A DNA stretch of 64,000 nt from Octopus sinensis (GCF_006345805.1 NC_043025.1:16926001-16990000); one strand, 5' to 3'; numbered from the stretch's first letter, positions 9,001 to 55,100 are shown. A program made the numbers and translations. The notes: generated by a model not told the origin, from the letters alone.

Positions 9001-12000
9001 AGTACACATCTGAAATATTTTGATATTTTCTAACCTGAAAACTTTTGAGAATTTAGTGATCTCTTGGATAAATATAAGCTTATTAGCACTCATATAGCTT
9101 ATAATTACCTATGAGATTACAAAATTTTTTTTTTTTTCAAATACACATTTGAAATATTTTGACATTTTCTAACCTGAAAACTTTTAAGAATTTAGTGATC
9201 TCTTGGATAAATATAAGCTTATTATCACTCAGCTAACTTATATTTATCTAACAGATCACAAAATTTTTTTTTGTTTTTCAAGTACACATTTGAAATATTT
9301 TGACATTTTCTCACCTGAAAACTTTTGAGACTTTAGTGATCAGTTGGAAAATATAAGCTTATTATCACTCATATAGCTTATATTTACCTAACAGATCACA
9401 AAATTTTTTTTTTTTTTGCAAGTACATATTTGAAATATTTTGACACTTTCTGACCTGAAAACTTTTGAGAATTTCGTGATCTGTTGGATACATATAAGTT
9501 TATTTTCACTCATATAGCTTATATTTACCTAACAGATCACAAAATTTTTTTTTGTTTTTCAAGTAGAGATTTGAAATATTTTGACATTTTTTATCCTGAA
9601 AACTTTTGAGAATTTAGTTATCTCTTGGATAAATATAAGCTTATTATCACTCTTATAGCTTATATTTACCTAACAAATCACAAAATTTTTTTTTGTTTTT
9701 CAAGTACACATTTGAAATATTTGACATTTTCTAACCTGGAACTTTGAGAATTTAGTGATCTCTTGGAAAATATAAGCTTATTATCACTCATATAGCTTAT
9801 ATTTTCCTACGAGATTAAAATTTTTTTTTGTTTTCAAATACACATTTGAAATATTTTGACATTTTCTAACCTGAAAACTTTTGAGAATTTAGTGATCTCT
9901 TGGATAAATATAAGCTTATTATCATTCACTTAATTTATATTTACCTAAGAGATCACAAAATTTTTTTTCTATTTTTCAAGTACACATTTGAAATATTTTG
10001 ACATTTTCTAACCTGAAAACTTTTGAGAATTTAGTGATATCTTGGACAAATATAAGCTTATTATCACTCATATAGCTTATACTTACCTAACAGATCACAA
10101 ATTTTTGGTTTTCAAGTACACATCTGAAATATTTTGATTATTTTCTAACCTGAAAACTTTGAGAATTAGTGATCTCTGGATCAATATAAGCCTATTATCA
10201 CTCAGCTAATTTATATTATCTAACAGATCACAAAATTTTTTCTATTTTTCAAGTACACATTTGCAATATTTTGATATTTTCTAACCTGAAACTTTTAAGA
10301 ATTAGTGATCTCTTGGATAATATAAGCTTATTATCACTCAGCTAACTTATATTTATCTAACAGATCACAAAATTTTTTGTTTTCAAGTACACAATTGAAT
10401 ATTTTGACATTTTCTCACCTGAAAACTTTTGAGACTTTAGTGATCAGTGGAAAATATAAGCTTATTATCACTCATATAGCTTATATTTACATACGAGATC
10501 AGAAAAATTTGAAATATTTTGAGAATTTACTGATCTCTTGGATAAATAGAAGCTTATTATCATTCAGTTAATTTATATTTAACTAACAGATCACAAATTT
10601 TTTTCTATTTTTCGAGTACACATTTGAAATATTTTGACATTTACTAACCTGAAATCTTTGAGAATTTAGTGATCTCTTGGACAAAATATAAGCTTATTAT
10701 CACTCATATAGCTTATATTTACCTAACAGATCACAAAATTTTTTTTATTTTTCAAGTACACGTTTGAAATATTTTGGACATTTTCTAACCTGAAAACTTT
10801 TAAGAATTTAGTGATCTCTTGGATAAATATAAGCTTCTATCACTCAGCTAACTTATATTTATCTAACAGATCACAAATTTTTTTTGTTTTTTCAAGTACA
10901 CATTTGAAATAGTTGACATTCTCACCTGAAAACTTTTGAGACTTTAGTGATCAGTTGGCAAATATAGCTTATTATCACTCATATAGCTTATATTTACCTA
11001 CGAGATCAGAAAATTTTTTTTTTTTTTTAAGTACACATTTGAAATATTTTGACATTTTCTAACCTGAAATCTTTTGAGAATTTAGTGAACTCTTGGTCAA
11101 ATATAAGCTTATTATCACTCATAAAGCTTATATTTACCTAACAGATCACAAAATTTTTTTTTATTTTTCAAGTACACATCAAATATTTTGACATTTTCTA
11201 CCTGAAAACTTTTGAGAATTTAGTGATCTCTTGGATAAATATAAGCTTATTATCACTCAGCTAACTTATATTTATCTAACAGATCACAAAATTTTTTTTG
11301 TTTTTCAAGTACACATTTGAAATATTTGACATTTTCACCTGAAAACTTTTGAGACTTTAGTGATCAGTTGGAAAATATAAGCTTTATCATTCATAGCTTA
11401 TATTTACCTACGAGATCAGAAAATTTTTTTTTTTAAGAACACATTTGAAATTTTTGACATTTCTAACCTGAAAACTTTTGAGAATTTAGTGATCTCTTGG
11501 ATACATATAAGCTTATTATCACTCATATAGCTTATATTTTAAAAACCGACACAATTTTTTTTTGTTTTTCAGGTACACATTTGAAACATTTTGACAATTT
11601 CCAACCTGAAAACTTTTGAGAATTTAATGATCTCTTGGATAAATATAAGCTTATTATCACTCATATAGCTTATATTTACCTACGAGATTACAAAATTTTT
11701 TTTTTTCAATACACATTTGAAATTTTTGTTTGATATTTCTAATCTAAAACTTTTGAGAATTTAGTGATCTCTTGGATAAATATAAGTTTATTATCATTCA
11801 GTAAATTTATATTTACCTAACAGATCACAAAATTTTTTTTCATTTTTCAAGTACACATTGAATATTTGACACATTTCTAACCTGAAATCTTTTGAGAATT
11901 TAGTGATCTCTTGGACAAATATAAGCTTATTATCACATCATATAGCTTATATTTACCTAACAGATCACAAAATTTATTTTTTTGTTTTTCAAGTACACAT

Positions 12001-24000: not shown

Positions 24001-27000
24001 GAAAATTTTTTTATATTTTTCAAGTACACCTTTGAAATATTTTGATATTTTCTAACCTGGAACCTTTTGAGAATTTAGTGATCTCTGTTGAAATATAAGT
24101 TTACTATCACTCATATAGCTTATATTTACCTACGAGATTGCAAAATTTTTTTTTTTTCAAATACACATTTGAAATATTTTGATATTTTGTAATCTAAAAT
24201 GTTGAGAAATTTAGTGATCTCTTGGATAAATATAAGCTTATTATCACAGTTAATTTATATTTACCTAACAGATTACAAAAATTTTTTTATATTTTCAAGT
24301 AACATTTAAAATATTTTGACATTTTCTAACTGAAATTTTTGAGAATTTAGTGATGTCTTGGACAAATATAAGCTATTATCACTCATATAGCTTATATTTA
24401 CCTAACAGATCACAAAATTTTTTTGTTTTTCAAGTACACATTTGAAATATTTTGACATTTTCTAACCTGGAAACGTTGAGAATTTAGTGATCTCTGGGAA
24501 AATATAAGCCTATTATGACTCATATAGCTTATATTTACCTACGAATTAGTATCTCTGGATAAATAAAGCTTCTTATCATTCAGTTAATTTATATTTACCT
24601 AACAGATCACAAAATTTTTTTATTTCGAGTACACATTTGAAATATTTGACATTACCACACATTTCTCACCTGAAAACTTTTGAGACTTAGTGATCAGTTG
24701 GAAAATATAAGCTTATTACATTCATATAGCTTTATTTACCTACGAGATCAGAAAATTTTTTTTTTTTTTAAGTACACATTTGAAATATTTTGACATTTTC
24801 TAACCTGAAAACTTTGAGAATTAGTGATCTCTTGGATAAATATAAGTTTATATCATTCATAAAATTTATATTTACCTAACAGATCACAAAATTTTTTTTG
24901 TTTTTCAAGTACAATTTGAAATATTTTACATTTCTAACCTGAAATTTTTGAGAATTTAGTGATGTCTGGACGAATATAAGCTTATTATCACTCATATAGC
25001 TTATCTTTACCTAACAGATCACAAAATTTTTTTTATTTTTCAAGTACACTTTGAAATATTTTGACATTTTCTAACCTAGAAACTTTGAGAATTTAGTGAT
25101 CTCTTGGAAAATATAGCCTATATGACTCATATAGTTATATTTACCTACGAATTTAGTGATCTCTGGATAAATATAAGTTATTATCATTCAGTTAATTCTA
25201 TATTACCTAAAGATCACAAAATTTTTTTTATTTTTCGAGTACACATTTGAAATATTTGACATTTCTCAACCTGAAAACTTTTGAGACTTTAGTGATCAGT
25301 TGGAAAATATAAGCTTATTAACATTCATATAGCTTATATTTACCTACAGAGATCAGAAAATTTTTTTTTTTTTTAAGTACACATTTGAAATATTTTGACA
25401 TTTTTAACCTGAAAACTTTTGAGAATTTAGTGATCTCTTGGATAAATATAAGTTATTATCATTCAGTAAATTTATATTTACCTAACAGATCACAAATTTT
25501 TTTCGTATTTTCAAGTACCATTTGAAATATTTTCACATTTTCTACCTGAAATTTTTGAGAATTAGTGATCTCTTGGACAAATATAAGCTTATTATCACTC
25601 ATATAGCTTATATTTACCTAACAGATCACAAAATTTTTTTTGTTTTTCAAGTAGACATTTGAAATATTTTGACACTTTTCTAACCTGAAAACCTTTGAGA
25701 ATTTAGTGATCTCTTAGTTAAATATAAGCATATTATCACTCAGTTAACATATATTTACCTAACAGATCACAAAATGTTTTCAAGTACACATTGAAATATT
25801 TTGACATTTTCTAACCTGAAAACTTTTGAGAATTTAGTTATCTCTTGGATAACTATAAGCTTATTATCACTCATATAGCTTATATTTACCTAACAGATCA
25901 CAACATTTTTTTTTGTATTTCAAGGCACATTTGAAATATTTTGACATTTTCACCTGAAAACTTTTGAGAATTTAGTGATCTCTGGATAAATATAAGCTTA
26001 TTATCACTCAGCTATACTTATATTTATCTAAGAGATCACCAAATTTTTTTTATTTTTCAGTACAACATTTGAGAAATATTTTGACATTTTTAACCTGAAA
26101 ACTTTGAGAATTAAGTGATCTCTTGGATTAATATAAGCCTATTATCACTCAGCTAACTTATACTTATCTAACAGATCAGAAAATTTTTTTATATTTTTCA
26201 AGTACACCTTTCAAATATTTTGATATTTTCTAACCTGAAAACTTTTAAGAATTTAGTGATCTCTTGTATAAATATAACCTTATTATCACTCAGCTAACTT
26301 ATATTTATCTAATAGATCACAAAATATTTTTTTGTTTTTCAAGTACACATTTGAAATATTTTGACATTTTCTAACCTGAAAACTTTTGAGAATTTAGTGA
26401 TCTCTTGGATACATAATAGCTTATTATCACTCATATAGCTTATATTTACCTAACCGTTCACAAAATTTTTTTTTGTTTTTCAGGTACACATTTGAAATAT
26501 TTTGACAATTTCCAACCTGAAAACTTTTGAGAATTTAGTGATCTCTTGGATAAATATAAGCTTATTATAACTCATATAGCTTATATTTACCTAATAAATC
26601 ACAAAATTTTTTTTTGTTTTTCAAGTACACATTTGAAATATTTTGACATTTTCTAACCTGGAACTTTTGAGAATTTAGTGATCTCTTGGAAAATATAAGC
26701 TTATTATCACTCATATAGCTTATATTTACCTACGAGACTACAAAATTTTTTTTTTTTTCAAATACACATTTGAAATATTTTGATATTTTCTAATCTTAAA
26801 ACTTTTGAGAATTTAGTGATCTCTTGGATAAATATAAGCTTATTATCATTCAGTTAATTTATATTTACCTAACAGATCACAAAATTTCTTTATATTTTTC
26901 AAGTACACATTTGAAATATTTTGACATTTTCTAACCTGAAAACTTTTAAGAATTTAGTGATCTCTTGGATAAATATAAGCTTATTATCACTCATATAGCT

Positions 27001-29150: not shown

Positions 29151-32100
29151 AAGTACACATTTGAAATATTTTGACATTTTCTAACCTGAAAACTTTTGAG
29201 AATTTAGTGAGCTCTTGGATAAATATAAGCTTATTATCACTCATATAGCTCATATTTACCTAACAGATCACAAAATTTTTTTTTGTTTTTCAAGTACACA
29301 TTTGAAATATTTTGACATTTTCTAACCTGAAAACTTTTGAGAATTTAGTTATCTCTTGGATAAATATAAGCTTATTCACTCATATAGCTTATATTTACCG
29401 AACAGATCACAAAATTTTTTTGTTTTTCAAGTACACATTTGAAATTTTTAACATTTTCTAACTGAAAACTTTTGAGAATTTTGTGATCCTTTGATAATAT
29501 AAGCTTATTATCATTCATATAGCTTATATTACCTAACAGATCACAAATTTTTTTTGTTTTTCAAGTACATATTGAAATATTTTGACATTTTCTAACCTGA
29601 AAATTTTGAGAACTTAGTTATCTCTTGGATAAATATAAGCTTATTATCACTCATATAGCTTATATTTACCTCGCAGATCACAAATTTTTTTTGGTTTTTC
29701 AAGTACAAATTTGAAATATTTTGACATTTCTAACCTAAAAACTCCTGAGAATTTAGTGATCTCTTGGATAAATATAAGCTTATTATCACTCATATAGTTT
29801 ATCACAAGATTTGTTCTTATATTTCAAGTACACATTTGAAATATTTTGACATTTTCTACCTAAAAACATTTGAGAATTCAGTGATCTCTTGGATAAATAT
29901 ATGCTTATTATCACTCAGTTAACTTCAATTTACCTAATAGATCACAAAATTATTTTTTGTTTTTCAAGTACACATCTGAAATATTTTGACATTTTCTAAC
30001 CTGAAAACTTTTGACGATTTAGTGATCTCTTGGATAAATATAAGCTTATTATCACTTAGTTAACTTATATTTATCTAACAGATCAGAACATTTTTTTTTT
30101 GTTTTTCAAGTATACATTTGAAATATTTTGACATTTTCTAACCTGAAAACTTTTGAGAATTTAGTGATATCTTGGAAAATATAAGCTTATTATCACTCAT
30201 ATAGCTTATATTTACCTAACCGATCAGAAAATTTTTTTTTGTTTTTCAAGTACACATTTGAAATATTTTGACATTTTCTAACCTGAAAACTTTTGAGAAT
30301 TTAGTGATCTCTTGGAAAAATATAAGCTTATTATCACTCATATAGCTTATATTTACCTAACCGATCACAAAATTTTTTTTCGTTTTTCAAGGACACATTT
30401 GAAATATTTTGACATTTTGTCACCTGAAAACTTTTGAGAATTTAGTGATCTCTTGGAAAATATAAGCTTATTATCACTCATATAGCTTATATTTACCTAC
30501 GAGATTACAAAATTTTTTTTTTTTTTCAAATATTCATTTGAAATAATTTGACATTTTCTAACCTGAAAACGTTTGAGAATTTAGTGATCTCTTGGATAAA
30601 TATAAGCTTATTATCACTCATATAGCTTATATTTACCTACGAGATTACAAAATTTTTTTTGTTTTTCAAGTACACATATGAAATATTTTGACATTTTCTA
30701 ACCTCAAATGTTTTCACAATTTAGTGAACTCTTGGATAAATATAAGCTCATTATCAATCATATAGCTTATATTTACCTAACAGCTCACAAAATATTTTTT
30801 TGTTTTTCAAGTACACATTTGAAGTATTTTGACATTTTCTAACCTGAAAACTTTTGAGAATTTAGTGATCTCTTGGATAAATATTAGCTTATTATCTTTA
30901 TATAGCTTATATTCTCCTAAGAGACAACGAAATTTTTTTTTTTTTTCAAGTACACATTTGAAATATTTTGACATTTTCTAACATGAAAACTTTTGAGAAT
31001 TTAGTGATCTCTTGGATAAAATTAAGCTTCTTGTCACTCATATAGCTTATATTTACCTAACAGATCACAAAATGTTTTTTTTTTCAAGTACACATTTGAA
31101 ATATTATGACATGTTCTAACCTGAAAACTTTTGAGAATTAATGATTTCTTGGATAAATATAAGCTTATTATCACTCATATAGCTTATATTTTTTTAAGAG
31201 GCAACGAAAAGTTTTTTTTTTTTTCAAGTACACATTTGAAATATTTTGACATTTTCTAACCTGAAAACCTTTGAGAATTTAGTGATCTCTTAGTTAAATA
31301 TAAGCATATTATCACTCAGTTAACATATATTTACTCAACAGATCACGAAATTTCTTTCTGTTTTCAAGTACACATTTGAAATATTTTGACATTTTCTAAC
31401 CTGAAATCTTTTGAGAATTTAGTGATCTCTTGGATAAATATAAGCTATATGAGTGATAGTAAACTTATATTTATCCAAGAGATCACTAAATTAGCTTATG
31501 TTTACCTAAGAGATCACAAAATTTATTTTTGTTTTTCAAGTACACATTTGAAATATTTTGACATTTTGTATTCTGAAAACTTTTGACAATTTAGTGATCT
31601 CTTGTATAAATATAAGCTTATTATCACTCATAAAGCTTATAACAGATGACAAAATTTTTTTTTTGTTTTTCAAGTACACATTTGAAATATTTTGACATAT
31701 TCTAACCTGAACACTGTTGAGAATTTAGTGATTTCTTTGATAAATATAAGCTTATTATCACTCATGTAACTTATATTTAACTAACACATCAAAAATTTTT
31801 TTTTGTTGTTCAAGTACGCATTTGAAATAATTTGACATTTTCTAACCTGAAAACTTTTGAGAACTTAGTGATCTCTTGGATAAAAATAAGCTTATTGTCA
31901 CTCATATAGCTTATATTTACCTTCCAGATCACGAAATTTTTTTTTTTTTTTTTGAAGTACATATTTGAAATATTTTGACATTTTCTAACCTGAAAACATT
32001 TGAGAATTTAGTAATCTCTTGGATAAATATAAGCTTAATATCACTCGTATAGCTTATATTTACCAAACAGATCACAAATTTTTTTTTTTTATTCATGTAC

Positions 32101-35100
32101 ACATTTGAAATATTTTGAAATTTTCTAACCTGAAAACTTTTGAGAATTTTGTGGTCTCTTTGATAAATATAAGCTTATCCTCACTCATAGAGCTTATATT
32201 TACCTAAAGATCACAAATTTTTTTTTTCTTTTTCAAGTACACATGTGAAATATTTTGACATTTCATAACCTATAATCTTTTGAGAATTTAGTGATCTCTT
32301 GGATAAATATAAGCTTATTATCACTCATATAGCTTATATTTACCTAACAGAATACAAAATTTTTCTTTGTTTTTCAAATACACATTTGAAATATTTTGAC
32401 ATTTTCTAACCTGAAAACTTTTGAGAATTCATTGATCTCTTTGATAAATATCAGCTTATTATCACTCATATAGCTTATATTTACCTAACAGATCACCAAA
32501 TTCTTTTTTTTTTTTTCAAGTACACATTTGAAATATTTTGACATTTTCTAACCTCAAATGTTTCACAATTTAGTGAACTCTTGGATAAATATAAGCTCAT
32601 TATCAATCATATAGCTTATTTACCTAACAGCTCACAAAAATTATTTTTTGTTTTTCAAGTACACATTTGAAGTATTTGACATTTTCTAACCTGAAAACTT
32701 TTGAGAATTTAGTGATCTCTTGGATAAATATAGCTTATTATCTTTATATAGCTTATATTCTCCTAAGAGACCACGAATTTTTTTTTTTTTTTCAATACAC
32801 TTTCAAATATTTTGACATTTTCTAACATGAAACCTTTGAGAATTTAGTGATCTCTTGGATAAAATTAAGCTTCTTGTCACTCATATAGCTTATATTTACC
32901 TAACAGATCACAAAATGTTTTTTTTTTCAAGTACACATTTGAAATATTATGACATGTTCTAACCTGAAAACTTTTGAGAATTAATGATTTCTTGGATAAA
33001 TATAAGCTTATTATCACTCATATAGCTTATATTTTCCTAAGAGGCAACGAAATGTTTTTTTTTTTTCAAGTACACATTTGAAATATTTTGACATTTTCTA
33101 ACCTGAAAACCTTTGAGAATTTAGTGATCTCTTAGTTAAATATAAGCATATTATCACTCAGTTAACATATACTTACTCAACAGATCACGATATTTCTTTC
33201 TGTTTTCAAGTACAAATTTGAAATATTTTGACATTTTCTAACCTGAAATCTTTTGAGAATTTAGTGATCTCTTGGATAAATATAAGCTTATTATCACTCA
33301 TAAAGCTTATGTTTACCTAAGAGATCAAAAAATTTATTTTTGTTTTTCAAGTACACATTTGAAATATTTTGACATTTTCTAATCTGAAAACTTTTGAGAA
33401 TTTAGTGATCTCTTGTATAAATATAAGCTTATTATCATTCATAAAGCTTATATTTACATAACAGATCACAAAATTTTTTTTTGTTTTTCAAGTACACATT
33501 TGAAATATTTTGACATTTTCTAACAGGAAAACTTTTGAGAATTTAGTGATCTCTTGGATAAATATAAGTTTACTATCACTCATATAGCTTATATTTACCT
33601 AACAGATCACAAAATTTTTTTTTGTTTTTCAAGTACACATTTGAAATAATTTGACATTTTCTAACCTGAAAACTTTTGAGAATTTGGTGATCAGTTGGAA
33701 AATATAAGCTTATTATCACTCATATAGCTTATATTTACCTTATAGATCACAAAATTTTTTTTTTTTTCAAGTACACTTTTGAAATATTTTGACATTTTCT
33801 AACCTGAAAACCTTTGAGAATTTAGTGATTTCTTTGATAAATAAAAGCTTATTATCACTCATATAGCTTATACTTACCTAATAGATCAGAAATTTTTTTT
33901 TTGTTTATCAAGTACACATTTGAAATATTTTGACATTTTCTAACGTGAAATCTTTTGAGAATTTAGTGATCTCTTGGATAAATATAAGCTTCTTATCACT
34001 CATATAGCTTATAATTACCTAACAGACAACAACATTTTCTTTTGTTTTTCAAGTACACATTTGAAATATTTTGACATTATCTAACAGGAAAACTTTTGAA
34101 AATTTAGTGATCTCTTGGATAAATATAAGCTTATTATCACTTATATAGCTTATATTTTCCTAAGAGACAAGGCAATTTTTTTTTGGTTTTGAAGTACACA
34201 TTTGAAATATTTTGACAGTTTCTAACCTGAAAATTTTGAGAATTTAGTGATCTCTTGGAAAAATATAAGCTTATTATCTTTATATAGCTTATATTCTCAT
34301 AAGAGACAACGAAATATTTTGACATTTTCTAACATGAAAACTTTTGAGAATTTAGTGATCTCTTGGATAAATATAAGCATATTTTCACTTAGATAGCTTA
34401 TATTTTCCTAAGAGACAACGAATTTGTTTTTGTTTTTCCAGTACACATTTGAAATATTTTGACATTTTCTAACCTGAAAACTTTTGAGAATTTAGTGATC
34501 TCTTGGACAAGAGATCACAAAAAAAATATTTTGACATTTTCTAACCTGAAAACTTTTGAGAATTTGGTGATCTTTTGGATAAATATAAGCTTATTATCTC
34601 TCATATAGCTTATATTTACGTAACAGATCACAAAATTGTTTTTTGTTTTTAAGTACACATTTGAAATATTGTGGCATTTTCTAACCTGAAAACTTTTGAG
34701 AATTTAGTGATCTCTTGGATAAATATAAGCTTATTATCACTCATAGAGCTTATTCTTACCTAACAGATCATCAAATTTTTTTTTGTTTTTCAAGTACACA
34801 TTTGAAATATTTTGACAATTTCTAACATGAAAACTTTTGAGAATTTAGTGATCTCTTGGATAAACATAAGCTTATTATCAATCATATAGCTTATATTTAC
34901 CTCACAGATCACTAAATTTTTGTTTTCGTTTTTCAAGTACACATTTGAAATATTTTGAATTTTCTAACCTGAAAACTTTTGAGAATTTAGTGATCTCTTG
35001 GATAAATGTAAGCTTATTATCAGTCATATAGCTTATATTTACCTAACAGATCACTAAATTTTTTTTTTCGTTTTTCAAATACACATTCGAAATATTTTGA

Positions 35101-35480
35101 CATTTTCTAACCTGAAAAGTTTTGAGAATTTGGTGATCTCTTGGATAAATATAAGCTTATTATCACTCATATAGCTTATTCTTACCTAACAGATCACAAA
35201 TTTTTTTTTTGTTTTTCAAGTACACATTTGAAATATTTTGAAATTTTCTAACCTGAAAAGTTTTGAGAATTTGGTGATCTCTTGGATAAATATAAGCTTA
35301 TTATCACTCATATAGCTTATTCTTACCGAACAGATCACAAAATTTTTTTTTGTTTTTCAAGTACACATTTGAAATATTTTGACATTTTCTAACAGGCAAA
35401 CGTTTGAGAATTTAGTGATCTCTTGGATAAATATAAGCTTATTATCACTCATATAGCTTATATTTTCCTAAGAGACAAAA
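29150..35480 (+). repeat. Diverged monomeric domain with private variants, deletions and a ~1-kb duplication
   Basis: The HOR markers are lost and new variants appear (ttcctaagagacaacga, aacaggaaaac, acctcaaatgtttcacaattt). There are several truncated monomers (29810, 34311, 34510). Confidence 0.75.
31447..31492 (-). repeat. 46-nt inverted satellite patch replacing the hairpin loop of one monomer
   Basis: atatgagtgatagtaaacttatatttatccaagagatcactaaatt is the exact reverse complement of 33540-33585. It creates a perfect 29-bp inverted repeat (31416-31444 / 31464-31492). Confidence 0.92.
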
Positions 35481-37561
35481 AATATTTGTGATCTGTTAGG
35501 TAACTATAAGCTATATGAGTGATAATAAGCTTATATTTATCCAAGAGATCACTAAATTCTCAAAAGTTTTCAGGTTAGAAAATGTCAAAATATTTCAAAT
35601 GTGTACTTGAAAAACAAAAAAAAATTTCGTTGTCTCTTAGGAAAATATAAGCTATATGAGTGATAATAAGCTTATATTTATCCAAGAGATCACTAAATTC
35701 TCAAAAGTTTTCAGGTTAGAAAATGTCAAAATATTTCAAATGTGTACTTGAAAAACAAAAAAAAATTTTGTTGTCTGTTAGGTAATTATAAGCTATATGA
35801 GTGATAATAAGCTTATATTTATCCAAGAGATCACTAAATTCTCAAACGTTTTCAGGTTAGAAAATGTCAAAATATTTCAAATGTGTACTTGAAAAACAAA
35901 AAAAAATTTCGTTGACTCTTAGGAAAATATAAGCTATATGAGTGATAATAAGCTTATATTTATCCAAGAGATCACTAAATTCTCAAAAGTTTTCAGGTTA
36001 GAAAATGTCAAAATATTTCAAATGTGTACTTGAAAAACAAAAAAAAATTTTGTTGTCTGTTAGGTAAATATGAGCTATATGAGAGATAATAAGCTTATAT
36101 TTATCCAAGAGATACCTAAATTCTCAAAAGTTTTCAGTTTAGAAAATGTCAAAATATTTAAAATTTGTACTTGAAAAACAAAAAAAAATTTTGTTGTCTG
36201 TTAGCTAAATATAATCTAGATGAGTGATAATAAGCTTATATTTATCCAAGAGATCACCAAATTCTCAAAACTTTTCAGGTTAGAAAATTTCAAAATATTT
36301 CAAATGTGTACTTGAAAAACAAAAAAAAATTTTGTGATCTGTTAGGTAAATATAAGCTATATGAGTGATAATAAGCTTATATTTATCCAAGAGATCACTA
36401 AATTCTCAAAAGTTTTCAGGTTAGAAAATGTCAAAATATTTCAAATGTGTACTTGAAAAACAAAAAACAATTTTGTGATCTGTTAGGTAAATATAAGCTA
36501 TATGAGAGATAATAAGCTTATATTTATCCAAGAGATCACCAAATTCTCAAAAGTTTTCAGGTTAGAAAATGTCAAAATATTTCAAATGTGTACTTGAAAA
36601 ATAAAAAAAAATTTCGTTGTCTCTTAGGAAAATATAAGCTATATAAGTGATAATAAGCTTATATTTATCCAAGAGATCACTAAATTCTCAAAAGTTATCA
36701 GGTTAGAAAATGTCAAAATATTTCAAATGTGTACTTGAAAAACAAAAAAAATTTTGTTGTCTCTTAGGTTATTATAAGCTATATGAGTGATGATAAGCTT
36801 ATATTTATCCTAGAGATCACCAAATTCTCAAACGTTTTCAGGTTAGAAAATGTCAAAATATTTCAAAAGTGTACTTGAAATACAAAAAACAATTTTGAGA
36901 TCTGTAAGATAAATATAAGTTAACTGAGTAAATATAAGCTATATGAGTGATAATAAGCTTATATTTATCCAAGAGATCACTAAATTCTCAAAAGTTTTCA
37001 GGTTACAAGATGTCAAAATATTTCAAAAGTGTACTTGAAAAACAAAAAAAAATTTTGTGATCTGTTAGGTAAATATATGCTATATGAGTGATAGTAAGCT
37101 TATATTTAGCCAAGAGATCACTAAATTCTCAAAAGTTTTCAGGTTAGAAAATGTCAAAATATTTCAAATGTGTACCTGAAAAACAAAAAACAATTTTGTG
37201 ATGTCTTAGGAAAATATAAGCTATTTGAGTGATAATAAGCTTACATTTATCCAAGAGATCACTAAATTCTCAAAAGTTTTCAGGTTAGAAAATTCAAAAT
37301 ATTTCAAATGTGTACTTGAAAAACAAAAAAAAATTTGGGGACTGTTATGTAAATATAAGCTGTATGAGTGATAATAAGCGTATATTTACCCAAGAGATCA
37401 CTAAATTCTCAAACGTTTTCATGTTAGAAAATGTCAAAATATTTGAAATGTGTACTTGACAAACAAAAAACAATTTTGTGATCTGTTAGTTAAATATAAG
37501 CTATATGAGAGATAATAAGCTTATATTTATCGATGAGATCACTAAATTCTCAAAAGTTTTC
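35481..37561 (-). repeat. Inverted satellite block 1 (~2.1 kb, ~15 monomers)
   Basis: The sequence switches to the reverse-complement monomer (tttgtgatctgttagg..ctatatgagtgataataagcttatatttatccaagagatcactaaattctcaaaagttttcagg) after agagacaaaa at ~35480. It returns to forward orientation through a shared ttttc at 37557-37561. Confidence 0.97.
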
Positions 37562-43500: not shown

Positions 43501-45176
43501 TTATCACTCATATAGCTTATATTTACCTAACAGACAACAAATTTTTTTTTTTTTTCAAGTACACATTTGAAATATTTTGACATTTTCTAACCTGAAAACC
43601 TTTGAGAATTTAGTGATCTCTTGGATAAATATAAGCTTATAATCACTCATATAGCTTATATTTACCTAACAGATCACAAAATTTGTTTTTGTTTCTCAAG
43701 TACACATTTGAAATATTTTGACAATATCTAACCTGAAAACGTTTGAGAATTTATTGATCTCTTGGATAAATATAAGCTTATTATCACTCATATAGCTTAT
43801 ATTTACCTAACAGTTCACAAAATTTCTTTTTGTTTTTCAAGCACACATTTGTAATATTTTGAGTTTTTCTAACCTGAAATCTTTTGAGAATTTAGTGATC
43901 TCTCGGATAAATATAAGCTTATTATCACTCCTATAGCTTATATTTACCTAAAAGATCAAAAATTTCTTTTTGTTTTTCAAGTACACATTTGAAATATTTT
44001 GACAATTTCTAACCTGAAAACTTTTGAGAATTTAGTGATCTCTTGAATAAATATAAGCTTATTATCACTCATATAGCTTATATTTACCTAACAGATCACA
44101 AAATTTTTTTTTGTTTTTCAAGTACACATTTGAAATATTTTGACATTTTATAACCTGAAAACTTTTGAGAATTTAGTGATCTCTTGGATAAATATTAGCT
44201 TATTATCACTCATATAGCTTATATTTACCTAACAGATCACAATTTTTTTTTTTGTTTTTCAAGTACACATTTGAAATATTTTGACAATTTCTAACCTGAA
44301 AACTTTTGAGAATTTAGTGATCTCTTGAATAAATATAAGCTTATTATCACTCATATAGCTTATATTTACCTAACAGACAACAATTTTTTTTTTTTTTCAA
44401 GTACACATTGAAATATTTTGACATTTTCTAACCTGAAAACTTTTGAGAATTTAGTGATCTCTGGATAAATATAAGCTTATTATCACTCATATAGCTATAT
44501 TTACCTAACAGACAACAATTTTTTTTTGTTTTTCAAGTACACATTTGAAATATTTTGACATTTTCTAACCTGAAAAATTTGAGAATTAGTGATCTCTTGG
44601 ATAAATATAAGCTTATTATCACTCATATAGCTTATATTTACCTAACAGATCACAAAATTTTTTTGTTTTTCAAGTACACATTTGAAATATTTTGAGATTT
44701 TCTAACCTGAAAACTTTTGAGAATTTAGTGATCTCTTGGATAAATATTAGCTTATTATCACTCATATAGCTTATATTTACCTATCAGATCACAATTTTCT
44801 TTTTTTTTTTTCAAGTAAACATTTGAAATATTTTGACATTTTCTAACCTGAAAACGTTTGAGAATTTAGTGATCTCTTGGATAAATGTAAGCTTATAATC
44901 ACTCATATAGCTTATATTTACCTAACAGATCACAAAATTTCTTTTTGTTTTTCAAGTACACATTTGTAATATTTTGAGTTTTTCTAACCTGAAATCTTTT
45001 GAGAATTTAGTGATCTCTTGGATAAATATAAGCTTATTATCACTCATATAGCTTATATTTAGCTAACAGACAACATTTTTTTTTTTGTTTTTCAAGAACA
45101 CATTTGAAATATTTTAACATTTTCTAACCTGAAAAAATCTTTTTTTGTTTTTCAAGTATACATATGAAATATTTCT

Positions 45177-45864
45177 AATGTCAAAATATTTCAAATGTGT
45201 ACTTGAAAAACAAAAAAAAATTTTGTGATCTGTTATATAAATAAAAGTTAACTGAGTGATAATAAGCTTATATTTACCCAAGAGATCACTAAATTCTCAA
45301 AAGTTTTCAGGTTAGAAAATGTGAAAATATTTCAAATGAGTACTTGAAAAACAAAAAAAATATTTGTTGACTGTTACTTAAATATAAGCTATATGAGTGA
45401 TAATAAGCTAATATTTATCCAAGAGATCACTAAATTCTCAAAAGTTTTCAGGTTAGAAATTGTCAAAATATTTCAAATGTGTACTTGAAAAACAAAAAAA
45501 AATTGTGTGATCTATTAGGTAAATATAAGCTATATGAGTGATAATAAGCTTATATTTATCCAAGAGATCACTGAATTCTCAAAAGTTTTCAGGTTAGAAT
45601 TTGTCAAAATATTTCAAATGTGTACTTGAAAAACAAAAAAATATTTTGTGATCTGTTAGGTAAATATAAGCTATATGATTGATAATAAGCTTATATTTAT
45701 CCAAGAGATCACTAAATTCTCAAAAGTTTTCAGGTTAGAAACCGTCAAAATATTTCAAATGTGTACTTGAAAAGAAAAAAATTTTTGTGATCTGTTAGGT
45801 AATTATAAGCTATATGAGAGATAATAAGCTTATATTTATCCAAGAGATCACTAAATTCTCAAAA
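45177..45864 (-). repeat. Inverted satellite block 2 (~0.69 kb, ~5 monomers)
   Basis: Forward sequence ends gaaatattt (45174), followed by ct, then reverse aatgtcaaaatatttcaaatgtgtacttg. The reverse run ends ctcaaaa (45864) and forward aacctgaaaac resumes. Confidence 0.97.
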
Positions 45865-48800
45865 CCTGAAAACTTTTGAGAATATAGTGATCTCTTGTGT
45901 AAATATAAGCTTATTATCACTCAGCTAACTAATGTTTATCTAACAGAGAACAAAATTTTTTTTTGTTTTTTAAGTACACTTTTGAAATATTTTGACATTT
46001 TCTAACCTGAAAACGTTTGAGAATTTAGTGATCTCTTGGATAAATATAAGCTTATTATCACTCATATAGCTTATATCTACCTAACAGATCACAAAATTTT
46101 TCTTTGTTTTTCAAGTACATATTTGTAATATTTTGTGTTTTTCTAACCTGAAAACTTTTGAGAATTTAGTGATCTCTTGGATAAATATAAGCTTATTATC
46201 ACTCATATAGCTTATATTCACAGACCACAAAATTTTTTTTTTTTTTCAAGTACCATTTTGAAATATTTTGACAATTTCTAACTGAAAACTTTTGAGAATT
46301 TAGTGATCTCTTGGATAATATAAGCTTATTATCAGTCATATAGCTTATATTTACTAACAGATCGCAAAATTATTTTCTTTTTCAAGTACACATTTGAAAT
46401 ATTTTTGATATTTTCTAACCTGAAAAACTTTTGAGAATTAGTGATCTCTTGGATAAATATTAGCTTATTATCACTCATATAGCTTATATTTACCTAACAG
46501 ATCACAAATTTTTTTTTTGTTTTTCAAGTACACATTTGAAATATTTTGACATTTTCTAACCTGAAAACTTTTGAGAATATAGTGTTCTCTTGGATAAGTA
46601 TTAGCTTATTATCACTCATATAGCTTATATTTACCTAACAGACAACAATTTTTTTTTTTTTTTTTGAAGTACACATTTGAAATATTTTGACAATTTCTAA
46701 CCTGAAAACTTTTGAGAATTTAGTGATCTCTTGGATAAATATTAGCTTTTTATCACTCATATAGCTAATATTTACCTAAGAGATCACAAAATTTTTTTTT
46801 GTTTTTTAAGTACACTTTTGAAATATTTTGACATTTTCTAAGCTGAAAACGTTTGAGAATTTAGTGATATCTTGGATAAATATAAGCTAATAATCACTCA
46901 TATAGATTATATCTACCCAATAGATCACAAATTTTTTTTTTGTTTTTCAAGTACACATTTGAAATATTTTGACATTTTCTAACCTGAAAACTTTTGAGAA
47001 TTTAGTGATCTCTTGGATAAATATAAGCTTATTATCACTCATATAGCTAATATTTACCTAACTGATCACAAATTATTATTTTGGTTTTCAAGTACACATT
47101 TGAAATATTTTTACAAATTCTAACCTGAAAACTTTTGAGAATTTAGTGATCTCTTGGATAAATATAAGATTCTTATCACTCAGGTAACTTATATTTATCT
47201 GACAGATCACAAAATTTTTTTTTGTTTTTCAAGTACACATTCGAAATATTTTGACATTTTCTAACCTGAAAAATTTTGAGAATTTAGAGATCTCTTGAAT
47301 AAATATAAGCATATTATCACACATATAGCTTATATTTACCTAATAGATCACAAAATTTTTTTTTGTTTTTCAAGTACACATATGAAATATTTTGACATTT
47401 TCTAACCTGAAAACTTTTGAGAATATAGTGATCTCTTGGATAAGTATTAGCTTATTATCACTCATATAGCTTATATTTACCTAACAGACAACAAATTTTT
47501 TTTTTTTTTTTCAAGTACACATTGATGATATTTTGACATTTTTAACCTGAAAACTTTTGAGAATTAAGTGATCTCTCGGATAAATATAAGCTTATTCTCA
47601 CTCATATAGCTTTATATTTCCTAAAAAAATCACAAAATTTTTTTTGTTTTTCAAGTACACATTGAATTATTTTGACATTTTCTAACCTGAAAACTTTTGA
47701 GAATTGAGTGATCTCTTGGATAAATATTAGCTTATTATCACTCATATAGCTTATATTTACCTAACAGACAACAAATTTTTTTTTTTTCTCAAGTACACAT
47801 TTGAAATATTTTGACATTTTCTAACCTGAAAACTTTTGAGAATTTAGTGATCTCTCGGATAAATATAAGCTTATTATCACTCCTATAGCTTATATATACC
47901 TAAAAGAACAGAATTTTTTTTTTTTTTTTTCAAGTAAACATTTGAAATATTTTGACATTTTCTAACCTGAAAACCTTTGAGAATTTAGTGATCTCTTGGA
48001 TAAATATAAGCTTTTAATCACTCATATAGCTTATATTTACCTAACAGATCACAAAATTTGTTTTTTGTTTTCAAGTACACATTTGAAATATATTGACATT
48101 TTTCTAACTGAAAACTTTTGTGAGAATTTAGTGATCTCTCGGATAAATATAAGCTTATTATCACTCATATAGCTTATATTTACCTAAAAGATCAAAAATT
48201 TTTTTTTGTTTTACACATTTGAAATATTTTGACATTTTCTAACCTGAAAACTTTTGAGAATTTAGTGATCTCTTGGATAAATATAAGCTTATTATCACTC
48301 ATATAGCTTATATTTACCTAACAGATCACAAATTTCTTTTTTGTTTTTCAAGTACTTATTTGAAATATTTTCACATTTTCTAACCTGAAAACTTTTGAGA
48401 ATTTAGTGATCTCTTGGGTAAAAATAAGCTTATTATAACTCAGTTAACTTATGTTTATCTAACAGATCACAAAATCTTTTTTTGTTTTTCAAGTACACAT
48501 TTGAAATATTTTGACATTTTCTAACCTGAAAACTTTTGAGAATTTAGTGATCTCTTGGATAAATATAAGCTTATTATCACTCATATAGCTTATATTTACC
48601 TAACAGATCACAAAATATTTTTTTGTTTTTCAAGTACACATTTGAAATACTTTGACATTTCTAACCTGAAAACTTTTAAGAATTTAGTGATCTCTTGGAT
48701 AAATAAGAGCTTATTATCTCATCATATAGCTTATATTTACCTAACAGATCACAAAATATTTTTTTGGTTTTCAGTACACATTTGAAATATTTTGACAAAT

Positions 48801-50243
48801 TCTAACCAGAAACTTTAGAGAAGTAGTGATCTCTTGGATAAATATAAGCTTATTATCACTCATATAGTTATATTTACCTAACAGATCACAATATTTTTTT
48901 TTGTTTTTCAAGTACACATTTGAAATATTTTGACATTTTATAACCTGAAAACTTTTGAGAATTTAGTGATCTCTTGGATAAATATTAGCTTATTATCACT
49001 CATATAGCTTATATTTACCTAACAGATCACAATTTTTTTTTTTTTGTTTTTCAAGTACACATTTGAATATTTTGACAATTTCTAACTGAAAACTTTTGAG
49101 ATTTAGTGATCTCTTGAATAAATATAAGCTTATTATCACTCATATAGCTTATATTTACCTAACAGACAACAAATTTTTGTTTTTTTTTCAAGTACACATT
49201 TGAAATATTTTGACATTTTCTAACCTGAAAACTTTTGAGAATTTAGTGATCTCTTGGATAAATATAAGCTTATTATCACTCATATAGCTTATATTTAGCT
49301 AACAGACAACAATTTTTTTTTTGTTTTTCAAGAACACATTTGAAATATTTTAACATTTTCTAACCTGAAAATGTTTGAGAATTTAGGGAACTCTTGTATA
49401 AATATAAGCTTATTATCACTCATAAAGCTTATATTTACCTAACAGATCACAAAATATTTTTTTGTTTTTCAAGTACACATTTGAAATATTTTGACAATTT
49501 CTAACCTGAAAACTTTTGAGAATTTAGTGATCTCTTGAATAAATATAAGCTTATTATCACTCATATAGCTTATATTTACCTAACAGATCACAAAATTTTT
49601 TTTGTTTTTCAAGTACACATTTGAAATATTTTGAGATTTTCTAACCTAAAAACTGTTGAGAATTGAGTGATCTCTTGGATAAATATTAGCTTATTATCAC
49701 ACATATAGCTTATATTTACCTAACAGACAACAAATTTTTTTTTTTTTCAAGTACACATTTGAAATATTTTGACATTTTCTAACCTGAAAACTTTTGAGAA
49801 TTTAGGAACTCTTGGATAAATATAAGCTTATTATCACTCATATAGCTTATATTTACCTATCAGATCACAATTTTCTTTTTTTTTTTCATAAACATTTGAA
49901 ATATTTTGACATTTTCTAACCTGAAAACGTTTGAGAATTAGTGATCTCTTGGATAAATGTAGCTTATAATCACTCATATAGCTTATATTTACCTAACAGA
50001 TCACAAATTTCTTTTTGTTTTTCAAGTACACATTTGTAATATTTTGATTTTTCTAACCTGAATCTTTTGAGAATTAAGTGATCTCTTGGATAATATAAGC
50101 TTATTATCACTCATATAGCTTATATTTAGCTAACAGACAACATTTTTTTTTTTGTTTTTCAAGAACACATTTGAAATATTTTAACATTTCTAACCTGAAA
50201 AATCTTTTTTTTTGTTTTTCAAGTATACATATGAGCTATTTCT

Positions 50244-50920
50244 AATGTCAAATATTTCAAATGGTACTTGAAAAACAAAAAATTTTGTGATCTGTTATAT
50301 AAATAAACGTTAAACTGAGTGCTAATAAGCTTATATTTACCCAAGAGATCACTAAATTCTCAAAAGTTTTCAGGTTAGAAAAATGTGAAAATATTTCAAT
50401 GAGTACTTGAAAAACAAAAAAAAAAATTTGTGACTTTGTTACTGTATATAAGCTATATGAGTGTAATAAGCTAATATTTATCCAAGAGATCACTAAATTC
50501 TCAAAAGTTTTCAGGTTAGAAATTGTCAAATATTTCAAATGTGTCTTGAAAAACAAAAAAAAATTGTGTGATCTATAGGTAAATATAAGCTATATGAGTG
50601 ATAATAAGCTTATATTTATCCAAGAGATCACTAAATTCTCTCAAGTTTTCAGGTTAGTCAATTTGTCCAAATATTTCAAATGTGTACTTGAAAAACAAAA
50701 AATTTTTGTGATCTGTTAGGTAAATATAAGCTATATGATTGATAATAGCTTATATTTATCCAAGAGATCACTAAATTCTCAAAAGTTTTCAGGTTAGAAA
50801 TGTCAAAATATTTCAAATTGTACTTGAAAAGAAAAAATTTTTGTGATCTGTTAGGTATTATAAGCTAATATGAGAGATAATAAAGCTATATTTATCCAAG
50901 AGATCACTAAATTTTCAAAA
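50244..50920 (-). repeat. Inverted satellite block 3, duplicate of block 2
   Basis: It has the same upstream deletion (ctgaaaaatcttt), the same aagtatacatatg..ttctaatgtca junction and the same right junction as block 2. The offset is ~5.06 kb and this copy has more indel noise. Confidence 0.93.
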
Positions 50921-52149
50921 ACTGAAAACTTTTGAGAATATAGTGATCTCTTGTGATAAATATAAGCTTATTATCACTCAGCTAACTATATTTTATCTAA
51001 CAGATCACAAAATTTTTTTTGTTTTTTAAGTACACATTTGAAATATTTTGACATTTTCTAACTGAAAACGTTTGAGAATTTAGTGATCTCTTGGATAAAT
51101 ATAAGCTTATCACTCATATAGCTTATATTTACCTAACAGATCACAAAATTTTTCTTTGTTTTTCAAGTACACATTTTGAAATATTTTGTGTTTTCTAACC
51201 TGAAAACTTTTGAGAATTTAGTGATCTCTTGGATAAATATAAGCTTATTATCACTCATATAGCTTATATTTCACAGACCACAAAATTTTTTTTTTTTTTC
51301 AAGTACACATTTGAAATATTTTGACAATTTCTAACCTGAAAACTTTTGAGAATTTAGTGATCTCTTGGATAAATATAAGCTTATTATCACTCATTAGCTT
51401 ATATTTACCTAACAGATCGCAAAATTTTTTTTCTTTTTCAAGTACACATTTGAAATATTTTGATATTTTCTAACCTGAAAACTTTTGAGAATTTAGTGAT
51501 CTCTTGGATAAATATTAGCTTATTATCACTCATATAGCTTATATTTACCTAACAGATCACAAAATTTTTTTTTGTTTTTCAAGTATACATTTGAAATATT
51601 TTGACATTTTCTAACCTGAAAACTTTTGAGAATTTAGTGATCTCTTGGATAAATTAGCTTATTATCACTCATATAGCTTATATTTACCTAACAGACCAAA
51701 TTTTTTTTTTTTTTTCAAGTACACATTTGAAATATTTTGACAATTTCTAACCTGAAAACTTTTGAGAATTTAGTGATCTCTTGGATAAATATAAGCTTTT
51801 TATCACTCATATAGCTATATTTACCTAAGAGATCACAAAATTTTTTTTGTTTTTAAGTACACATTTGAAATATTTTGACATTTTCTAACTGAAAACTTTT
51901 GAGAATTTAGTGATCTCTTGGATAAATATAAGCTATAATCACTCATATAGCTTATATTTACCTACAGATCAAAAATTTTTTTTTGTTTTTCAAGTACACA
52001 TTTGAAATATTTTGACATTTTCTAACCTGAAAACTTTTGAGAATTTAGTGATCTCTTGGATAAATATAAGCTTATTATCACTCATATAGCTTATATTTAC
52101 CTAACAGATCACAAAATTGTTTTTTGGTTTTCAAGTACACATTTGAAAT

Positions 52150-55100
52150 ATTTTGACATTTTCTAACCTGAAAACTTTTGAGAATTTAGTGATCTCTTGG
52201 ATAAATATAAGCTTATTATCACTCATATAGCTTATATTTACCTAACAGATCACAATCTTTTTTTTGTTTTTCGAGTACACATTTGAAATATTTTGACATT
52301 TTCTAACCTGAAAACTTTTGAGAATTTAGTGATCTCTTGGATAAATATAAGCTTATTATCACTCATAAGCTTATATTTACCTAACAGATGACATTTCTTT
52401 TTTGTTTTTCAAGTACACATTTGAAATATTTGACATTTTCTAACCTGAAAACTTTTGAGAATTTAGTGATCTCTTGGATAAATATAAGCTTATTATCACT
52501 CATATAGCTTATATTTACCTAACAGATCACAAAATTTTTTTTTGTTTTTCAAGTACACATTTGAAATATTTTGACATTTTCTAACCTGAAAACTTTTGAG
52601 AATTTAGTGATCTCTTGGATAAATATAAGCTTATTATCACTCATATAGCTTATATTTACCTAACAGATCACAAATTTTTTTTTTGTTTTTCAAGTACACA
52701 TTTGAAATATTTTGACATTTTCTAACCTGAAAACTTTTGAGAATTTAGTGATCTCTTGGATAAATATAAGCTTATTATCACTCATATAGCTTATATTTAC
52801 CTAACAGATCAAAAATTTTTTTTGTTTTTCAAGTACACATTTGAAATATTTTGACATTTTCTAACCTGAAAACTTTTGAGAATTTAGTGATCTCTTGGAT
52901 AAATATAAGCTTATTATCACTCATATAGCTTATATTTACCTAACAGACAACAATTTTTTTTTTGTTTTTCAAGTACACATTTGAAATATTTTGACATTTT
53001 CTAACCTGAAAACTTTTGAGAATTTAGTGATCTCTTGGATAAATATAAGCTTATTATCACTCATATAGCTTATATTTACCTAACAGATCACAAAATTTTT
53101 TTTTGTTTTTCAAGTACACATTTGAAATATTTTGACATTTTCTAACCTGAAAACTTTTGAGAATTTAGTGATCTCTTGGATAAATATAAGCTTATTATCA
53201 CTCATATAGCTTATATTTACCTAACAGATCACAAATTTCTTTTTTGTTTTTCAAGTACTCATTTGAAATATTTTCACATTTTCTAACCTGAAAACTTTTG
53301 AGAATTTAGTGATCTCTTGGGTAAATATAAGCTTATTATCACTCAGTTATCTTATATTTATCTAACAGATCACAAAATTTTTTTTTGTTTTTCAAGTACA
53401 CATTTGAAATATTTTGACATTTTATAACCTGAAAACTTTTGAGAATTTAGTGATCTCTCGGATAAATATAAGCTTATTATCACTCATATAGCTTATATTT
53501 ACCTAACAGATCACAAAATTTTTTTTTGTTTTTCAAGTACACATTTGAAATATTTTGACATTTTCTAACCTGAAAACTTTTGAGAATTTAGTGATCTCTT
53601 GGATAAATATAAGCTTATTATCACTCATATAGCTAATATTACCTCAGATCACAAAATTTTTTTTTTGTTTTTCAAGTACACATTTGAAATATTTTGACAT
53701 TTTCTAACCTGAAAACTTTTGAGAATTTAGTGATCTCTTGGATAAATATAAGCTTATTATCACTCATATAGCTTATATTTACCTAACAGATCAAAAATTT
53801 TTTTTTGTTTTTCAAGTACACATTTGAAATATTTTGACATTTTCTAACCTGAAAACTTTTGAGAATTTAGTGATCTCTTGGATAAATATAAGCTTATTAT
53901 CACTCATATAGCTTATAATTACCTAACAGACAACAAATTTTTTTTTTGTTTTTCAAGTACACATTTGAAATATTTTGACATTTTCTAACCTGAAAACTTT
54001 TGAGAATTTAGTGATCTCTTGGATAAATATAAGCTTATTATCACTCATATAGCTTATATTTACCTAACAGATCACAAATTTTTTTTGTTTTTCAAGTACA
54101 CATTTGAAATATTTTGACATTTTCTAACCTGAAAACTTTTGAGAATTTAGTGATCTCTTGGATAAATAAGCTTATTATCACTCATATACTTATATTTACC
54201 TAACAGATCACAAATTTTTTTTTTGTTTTTCAAGTACACATTTGAAATATTTTGACATTTCTAACCTGAAAACTTTGAGAATTTAGTGATCTCTTGGATA
54301 ATATAAGCTTATTATCACTCATATAGCTTATATTTACCTAACAGATCACACAAAATTTTTTTGTTTTTCAAGTACACATTTGAAATATTTTGACATTTTC
54401 TAACCTGAAAACTTGAGAATTTAGTGATCTCTTGGATAAATATAAGCTTATTATCACTCATATAGCTTATATTTACCTAACAGACAACAAATTTTTTTTT
54501 TTTTTTCAAGTACACATTTGAAATATTTTGACATTTTCTAACCTGAAAACTTTTGAGAATTTAGTGATCTCTTGGATAAATAAGCTTATTATCACTCATA
54601 TAGCTTATATTTACCTAACAGATGAACACAAAATTTTTTTTGTTTTTCAAGTACACATTTGAAATATTTTGACATTTTCTACCTGAAAACTTTTGAGAAT
54701 TTAGTGATCTCTTGGGTAATATATAAGCTTATTATCACTCATTAGCTTATATTTATCTAACAGATCACAAAATTTTTTTTTGTTTTTCAAGTACACATTT
54801 GAAATATTTTGACATTTCTAACCTGAAAACTTTTGAGAATTTAGTGATCTCTTGGAAATATAAGCTTATTATCACTCATATAGCTTATATTTACTTAACA
54901 GATCACAAATTTTTTTTTGTTTTTCAAGTACACATTTGAAATATTTTGACATTTTCTAACCTGAAAACTTTTGAGAATTTAGTGATCTCTTGGATAAATA
55001 TAAGCTTATTATCACTCATAAAGCTTATATTTACCTAACAGACAACAAATTTTTTTTTTTTTCAAGTACACATTGAAATATTTTGACATTTTCTAACCTG

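Follow-up and report, generated by a model that had tools for sequence, protein, structure and literature searches.

In the analysed window (the whole stretch of DNA under study, 64 kb in length), one monomer of a satellite array has exchanged the 15-nt loop of its hairpin for 46 nt of satellite in reverse orientation. The inserted bases are the exact reverse complement of a segment of a different monomer, 2.1 kb away on this molecule, and both flanks are collinear with a sister monomer in a duplicated block. To judge by the sequence, the patch is probably the product of a single switch-and-return templated mutation, in which a polymerase would have switched strands at a fork or in a D-loop. 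The original prediction had proposed this course of events, a strand switch onto another monomer by way of the monomer's own inverted repeat followed by return, and the reading is supported, the subtype of the mechanism aside; all coordinates and strings of the loop exchange agreed on checking. The description of the event as "caught in the act" was, however, an overstatement, the patch being a completed, fixed mutation.

Approximately the whole window is one satellite array, for which Tandem Repeats Finder (TRF) gives a period of 137–141 bp and a dimer signal of 282 bp. The satellite is AT-rich (GC content 24% across the window) and has a monomer of ~141 bp; each monomer contains an imperfect inverted repeat (dyad) of ~25 bp that flanks a 15-nt loop, and the rest is asymmetric spacer. 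Anchor spacing yields no non-satellite insertions in the window, all anchor gaps being multiples of the monomer length. No published name for the satellite was found in the full-text literature by monomer substrings, or by keywords for a 141-bp dyad satellite. Exact patterns of the monomer were absent from the metagenome contigs scanned; the single match among genome contigs, L001 in a Bdellovibrionales MAG, was set aside as a chance 20-mer, the sequence around it being without satellite. Coordinates of the patch, of its sister and donor, of the duplicated and inverted blocks, and the consensus elements of the monomer are collected in Table 1.

Table 1. Features of the patched monomer and of the surrounding satellite array (positions counted from the first letter of the window).
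Feature	Position	Strand	Sequence or remark
Duplicated block, copy A	30640..31640 (approximate)	+	holds the patch
Duplicated block, copy B	32490..33450 (approximate)	+	~97% identical to copy A
Recipient AATT and left arm of dyad (end of fragment F1)	31416..31446	+	identical to sister 33258-33288
12-nt junction homology	31435..31446	+	TAAATATAAGCT; common to recipient left arm and reverse complement of donor right arm
Inverted patch, 46 nt	31447..31492	-	ATATGAGTGATAGTAAACTTATATTTATCCAAGAGATCACTAAATT; loop, left arm and AATT, all inverted
Recipient's own right arm, unaltered	31493..31517	+	AGCTTATGTTTACCTAAGAGATCAC; resumes straight after the patch
New perfect palindrome	31416..31492	.	arms 31416-31444 and 31464-31492, 19-nt spacer
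Sister (orthologous) monomer dyad in copy B	33258..33328	+	putative ancestral state
Donor monomer segment	33540..33597	+	33540-33585, reverse complement of patch; 33586-33597, donor side of 12-nt homology
Inverted block, 14 monomers	35477-37561	reverse	spacer-probe map
Inverted block, 5 monomers	45175-45864	reverse	spacer-probe map
Inverted block, 5 monomers	50242-50920	reverse	spacer-probe map
Consensus monomer, left arm			TAGTGATCTCTTGGATAAATATAAGCT
Consensus monomer, loop, 15 nt			TATTATCACTCATAT
Consensus monomer, right arm			AGCTTATATTTACCTAACAGATCAC
Consensus monomer, asymmetric spacer			~80 nt

The left arm of the patched monomer (...GGATAAATATAAGCT) runs in forward orientation and stops at 31446. 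The replacement of the loop adds a net 31 nt, that is, the inverted loop plus an extra inverted arm; the patch arm and the old right arm together form a 31-nt direct quasi-repeat, seen by TRF as a period of 31 at 31464–31523. The perfect inverted repeat announced by the original prediction (29-bp arms, 19-nt spacer) was recovered in an inverted-repeat search with 100% complementarity. Folded as single-stranded DNA, the ordinary dyad gives −15.6 kcal/mol in the sister and −12.3 kcal/mol in the donor (z ~ −6, well under shuffled controls), versus −27.1 kcal/mol (z = −9.8) for the patched locus. The possibility that the new hairpin belongs to a structured RNA gene, a miRNA precursor, was considered and rejected: the best Rfam match on both strands, MIR781, scores 42 bits against a gathering threshold of 88, and miRNA-like Rfam matches here reflect a generic long hairpin and are not evidence for a gene.

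The window holds 24 reverse-oriented loops, 23 of them inside the three large inverted blocks; the patch is the sole one outside. Its exit junction CACTAAATTAGCTT occurs once in the window and, given this and the solitary position of the reverse loop, the patch is not a chance arrangement. The junctions of the patch are represented by the strings AAGCTATATGAGTGATAGTAAAC and CACTAAATTAGCTTATG. When the upstream sequence is aligned by BLAST with other parts of the array, the long alignments stop at 31440–31446, at or just before the edge of the patch. A count of loop-flip monomers, proposed earlier as a check, was run for the window and returned the patch as one event among ~450 monomers, with no flipped loop or perfected arm in any other forward monomer of the window outside the three large blocks.

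The monomer before the event can be read from a duplication. Copy B of the duplicated block lies ~1.83 kb downstream of copy A, each copy spanning ~1 kb; identity between them is 94–100% per 100 columns, versus ~87% for random monomers, and many private variants are common to both. As had been claimed, the sister of the patched monomer in copy B keeps the ordinary loop and the same tail, with the canonical 15-nt TATTATCACTCATAA at 33289–33303. The tail variant of the right arm, AGCTTATGTTTACC, is found at 31493 and 33304 only, and is private to the patched monomer and its sister. Upstream of the patch the two monomers are identical over more than 70 nt, and downstream over 24 nt, followed by a single mismatch; the exchange of 15 nt (TATTATCACTCATAA) for 46 nt is the only structural difference between them. 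Since the sister has the same architecture as all other ~440 forward monomers, it is taken as the ancestral state; the window has no third copy of the duplicated block as an outgroup. Copy A also contains an 8-nt microhomology-flanked deletion, ~150 bp downstream of the patch and near the point where similarity between copies A and B decays.

These flanks also bear on the question of an artefact, be it a template switch made in vitro at the hairpin while the library was prepared, or a consensus that was joined or polished wrongly. It is true that polymerases readily switch strands in vitro on hairpin-forming, highly repetitive templates, and that the assembly of satellite arrays is difficult. 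However, chimeric joins flip the orientation for kilobases, whereas the patch comprises 46 nt and has both flanks in register and in phase with the sister; polishing errors cannot yield an exact reverse complement with the rare alleles of another monomer; and a consensus assembly requires several molecules bearing the same artefact. We consider an artefact very improbable.

The reverse complement of the patch matches positions 33540–33585 at 46/46, the donor segment named in the original prediction, and this is the sole perfect match in the window. Next best is a score of 44/46, reached by ~100 forward monomers and not exceeded by any reverse-oriented monomer of the window. As the consensus itself matches the patch at 44/46, the donor call hangs on specific sites. 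The own-locus sequence predicted from the sister agrees with the patch at 43/46, and at each of the three differences (AAGCT>AAGTT, TAT>TAC, and CATAA>CATAT) the patch has the donor base. Among 288 cleanly aligned monomers, T at column 30 is present in four and C at column 34 in two; the two variants are linked in two forward monomers only, the donor and a divergent copy at 24097. The corresponding rare-allele string of donor-type monomers is AAGTTTACTATC. The rare allele AGTTTACTA, described earlier as almost confined to these places, is limited in the window to two forward occurrences, at 24098 and 33567, and one reverse occurrence, at 31457, versus 335 forward copies of the common form AGCTTATTA; the monomer at 24098 carries a different left arm from that of the donor. 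The probability of both specific changes arising independently in a self-templated patch is of the order of 1e-4. By these alleles, and within the 64 kb, the copied bases are assigned to a 33540-type monomer, not to the locus's own opposite strand; the array runs past the window, hence, another identical donor may exist there. In the frame of copy B, the donor is 282 bp (two monomers) downstream of the sister position, just past the right edge of the copy.

The donor variants and the orientation of the neighbouring monomers also weigh on origins in several steps, namely, a larger inversion that was later trimmed, a same-orientation conversion from an inverted block, or a local switch followed by three mutations. 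The larger inverted blocks of the same array do supply reverse-oriented donors, and one of the two diagnostic variants is present in the reverse-oriented monomer at 37082; the conversion version would draw on a reverse-oriented monomer with GATAGTAAACTT. Against this stands the limit of 44/46 for reverse-oriented monomers in the window. An inversion of 31447–33585 would flip the right arm of the recipient and the next ~14 monomers, but all of these keep the forward orientation and the register of copy B, and undoing the inversion needs a second inversion and a precise deletion. The local switch, in turn, needs three specific substitutions all matching one monomer, including variants at ~1.4% and 0.7%. 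Both the inversion with deletion and the local switch with three mutations were rejected as unparsimonious explanations of the patch, and a multi-step origin in any of its forms appears still more far-fetched than an artefact.

The two junctions of the patch differ in kind. The entry falls, as predicted, in a 12-bp stem common to both orientations: TAAATATAAGCT (31435–31446) is the reverse complement of AGCTTATATTTA (33586–33597), and with flanking bases included the entry homology is 22/25. Since the switch point may sit anywhere in the 12-nt homology, the copied tract is 46–58 nt long. At the return, the join ...CACTAAATT/AGCTTATG... is blunt (AATT/AGCT at 31492/31493). Past this point, the donor continues as CTCAAAAG, and in the ancestral recipient AGCTT was preceded by ...CATAA; as both differ there, the return junction is without microhomology (0 nt), and hence only one of the two switches was homology-guided. 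The blunt return sits at the loop/stem boundary, within 1 nt of the stem base. Expressed in monomer phases, the forward sequence stops at 27, the reverse tract runs from 42 down to 138, and the forward sequence restarts at 43. Had the 26/31 homeology of the arms guided the return, it would have landed 31 nt farther downstream; the patched monomer has both arms instead.

Entry homology, together with two flanks in register with the sister, gives the patch the signature of a switch and return. The following order of steps would produce it. A 3' end bearing the recipient left arm (...TAAATATAAGCT) would leave its template and anneal, on the opposite strand, to a paralogous monomer at its right arm (33586–33597); the near-complementarity of the two arms in every monomer makes such annealing possible. 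Extension would proceed backwards through the donor loop and left arm, over 46 nt, and synthesis would rejoin the original template exactly where the recipient's own right arm begins, so that the imperfect dyad would become a perfect 29-bp palindrome. The switch may have occurred while the recipient end was paired to copy B, through unequal sister pairing or repair synthesis; with the recipient 3' end on copy B, the right arm of the donor would lie nearby, on either the displaced or the lagging-template strand. We infer both the one-step polymerase switch, at a fork or in a repair D-loop, and the direction of synthesis. Several points count against this scheme: a return guided purely by annealing should fall in register with the homeologous right arm (26/31) and not 31 nt earlier; the donor is 2.1 kb off, beyond the same-fork range assumed by the short-range model; the event is a single one (n = 1) among ~450 monomers; and the array extends past the window, where other identical donors may exist.

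The asymmetry of the junctions, 12 nt of homology versus a blunt join, also fits a hybrid mechanism known in yeast (PMC11724301) and brings in break repair as an alternative, in which a hairpin or cruciform would be cut at the loop, the left end would anneal to the paralogue's right arm, or invade it, and prime ~46 nt of synthesis there, and end joining would link the extended end to the other break end, which begins with the right arm. It is the hairpin loop itself that was lost, with the blunt join within 1 nt of the loop/stem boundary, and the 8-nt microhomology-flanked deletion ~150 bp downstream would be compatible with one error-prone repair tract. There is, however, no direct sign of a break, and the position of the blunt junction is given equally by the four-point model for template switches when its points 2 and 4 are adjacent. 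Published foldback insertions are mostly 5–34 bp long and have a break-adjacent template, whereas the patch is 46–58 nt long and comes from a paralogue. As far as can be told from the bases, break repair is a possible but rather unlikely origin; it differs from the preferred switch and return only in the start of the event and in the making of the second junction, and in both routes the monomer dyad primes a templated inverted insertion.

The patch was compared with known systems, and is a clean instance of a well-documented mutation class; the mechanism is not new, and a single event gives no rate. In the four-point model, the middle fragment has to be an exact reverse complement of the reference and at least 14 nt long so as not to be due to chance, and the patch matches at 46/46; the flanks are collinear with the ancestral sequence (the sister in copy B), and the points follow the order 3-1-2-4, with point 3 at AATT before the left arm, point 1 at the end of the left arm, point 2 at the end of the loop, and point 4 at the start of the right arm. 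This type, an inverted repeat with an inverted spacer, makes up 23% of human–chimpanzee template-switch events (Loytynoja & Goldman, 2017, PMC5453318), and inverted spacers are taken there as evidence of inter-strand switching. Similar in order to these short-range switches, the patch differs from them in its source: it was copied from a paralogue and not from its own opposite strand, the own locus matching at 43/46 and the paralogue at 46/46. Long-range sources are deliberately excluded from the published model, while the donor of the patch is at 2.1 kb (282 bp in the copy B frame). In yeast, spacer inversion with or without perfection of the arms, by inter-molecular switching between short inverted-repeat arms, has been described (PMC8604942).

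Classical quasi-palindrome correction (Ripley, 1982) resembles the patch in that an imperfect inverted repeat pairs, the spacer is inverted, and a perfect repeat results. The pre-existing imperfect inverted repeat is found here as well, the sister and the consensus both folding as a hairpin of ~25 bp. However, in the classical outcome the length is kept and one arm becomes the exact complement of the other, whereas here the right arm is untouched, a new 31-nt arm is inserted, and another repeat unit served as template. In yeast, templated inverted insertions at double-strand breaks have been shown to arise from synthesis by Pol delta at one end and capture by NHEJ or alt-EJ at the other, and are mostly 5–34 bp and locally templated (Yu et al., 2024, PMC11724301). 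Like the patch, they are homology-primed on one side, joined without homology on the other, and tens of nucleotides long. The patch has one homology-primed junction and one of the end-joining type (12 nt versus blunt), but in place of a local foldback template it has the alleles of a paralogue, and its tract is slightly over 5–34 bp.

MMBIR/FoSTeS is characterized by microhomology at every switch junction and by an origin at a collapsed fork or a one-ended break. The junctions of the patch have 12 nt (entry) and 0 nt (return), and the patch is a single inverted tract, in contrast to a complex multi-switch rearrangement.

Among satellites, orientation switches are known for TfSat01, the major satellite of Tribolium freemani, where they occur at truncated monomers and form hairpin tips with 9–27-bp loops (bioRxiv 10.1101/2024.12.02.626372; PMC12581902). 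The patch is similar in that a truncated monomer is followed by a reverse one truncated elsewhere, with no foreign sequence in between, and in its 19-nt loop. The TfSat01 junctions, however, bound kilobase-long inverted subarrays, and are conserved and amplified, whereas the patch is a unique excursion with immediate return, its reverse tract of 46 nt being a third of one monomer.

The event indicates that a satellite monomer's internal dyad can offer the pairing for a switch of strands onto a non-allelic unit. It is also an example of a switch within tandem repeats to a non-allelic template, a case that detection models for short-range switches exclude by design. The change from an imperfect to a perfect 29-bp palindrome provides a route both to a stronger non-B-DNA-forming sequence and to reverse-oriented satellite material. 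As a mutation the patch is unusually legible, the ancestor, the donor, and both junctions being readable within 2.2 kb.

The patch might even be a fossil of the same error-prone repair synthesis that copied block B into block A, though we think this improbable. A strand copying the sister would have jumped 282 bp ahead, paired through the dyad, to the strand displaced in that same D-loop, would have copied 46 nt back, and would have returned. At a divergence of ~3%, P(0/46 differences) is ~0.25, so the event may date to the A/B duplication or to the time after it. The absence of differences between patch and donor (0/46), the position of the donor at the very edge of copy B, and the nearby 8-nt deletion are compatible with such a fossil.

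If dyad monomers switch regularly, micro-excursions of this kind could seed kilobase-long inverted subarrays with macro-dyad symmetry. In this window, however, the main monomer dyad is not used at any large-block junction (four independent junctions). The junctions, at 35477–35487, 37557–37561, 45174/45177, 45863–45864, 50241/50244, and ~50911–50920, are near-symmetric U-turns with a phase offset of at most 11 nt and either 2–11 nt of overlap or a 2-nt gap, and are situated at small quasi-palindromes of the spacer, AAAATATTT and AAAAGTTTTC/GAAAACTTTT. A simple two-break inversion was rejected for the large blocks, the two ends of a block turning at different monomer phases. Rejected, too, was their origin as fresh mirror copies of the flanks: mirror identity does not exceed the array background (0.87 ± 0.08), with register drift making part of this comparison uninformative. 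The large blocks are ~94% identical to consensus-like monomers, with no specific donor; by this identity they are older, and do not inform the mechanism of the patch. The blocks at 45 kb and 50 kb are paralogues of each other, lying in a duplication ~5.05 kb apart.

The forward array is interrupted by three reverse-oriented subarrays (see table). At all of their junctions the orientation changes in a near-symmetric U-turn, with a phase offset of at most 11 nt, and each turn site is a small quasi-palindrome in the monomer spacer. The monomer phase of the turn differs between the two ends of each subarray; hence, a simple two-break inversion does not account for them. Segments 45070–46400 and 50100–51400 are paralogous (~94% identity, offset ~5.03–5.07 kb) and contain both inversion junctions, so an inverted block has itself been duplicated, within a larger unit.

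Reverse-oriented subarrays and truncated or odd units in the window
Feature	Positions	Monomers	TRF period(s)	Location
Reverse-oriented subarray	35477–37561	14		within forward array
Reverse-oriented subarray	45175–45864	5		within forward array
Reverse-oriented subarray	50242–50920	5		within forward array
Truncated or odd unit	2524–2999		100/236	left third
Truncated or odd unit	10293–10742		92/232	left third
Truncated or odd unit	24343–25347		197	left third

The 14-monomer reverse block also contains a 19-nt direct tandem duplication at 36910–36964 (TAAATATAAGTTAACTGAG / TAAATATAAGCTATATGAG), which links two different loop alleles and gives a 160-bp monomer (TRF rows 36773–37077 and 36910–36964). 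Slippage could have produced it, as could out-of-register exchange of two monomer variants.

The perfect palindrome created by the patch (31413–31495, both strands) matches several miRNA precursor families in Rfam, all below threshold; the best match, MIR781, scores 42 bits vs. a gathering score of 88, and the resemblance is that of a generic hairpin only. The sole match in the public collection to a 20-mer from the monomer, at 7417–7436 of a contig from a Bdellovibrionales metagenome-assembled genome (L001), lacks surrounding satellite and is a chance match.

In the patch-bearing duplicated block (copy A), the next monomer downstream lacks 8 nt of the right arm at ~31645–31652 (vs. 33461–33468), reading AAAGCTTATAACAG vs. 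AAAGCTTATATTTACATAACAG in the sister block, copy B. ATA microhomology borders this deletion on either side, near the point where the similarity of the two copies decays.

Monomers of the right-hand ~12 kb (52000–64000) are highly homogeneous, consensus-like, and 139–141 bp long. The left third of the window (1–25000) is more divergent, includes a 137-bp length class, and contains several truncated or odd units.
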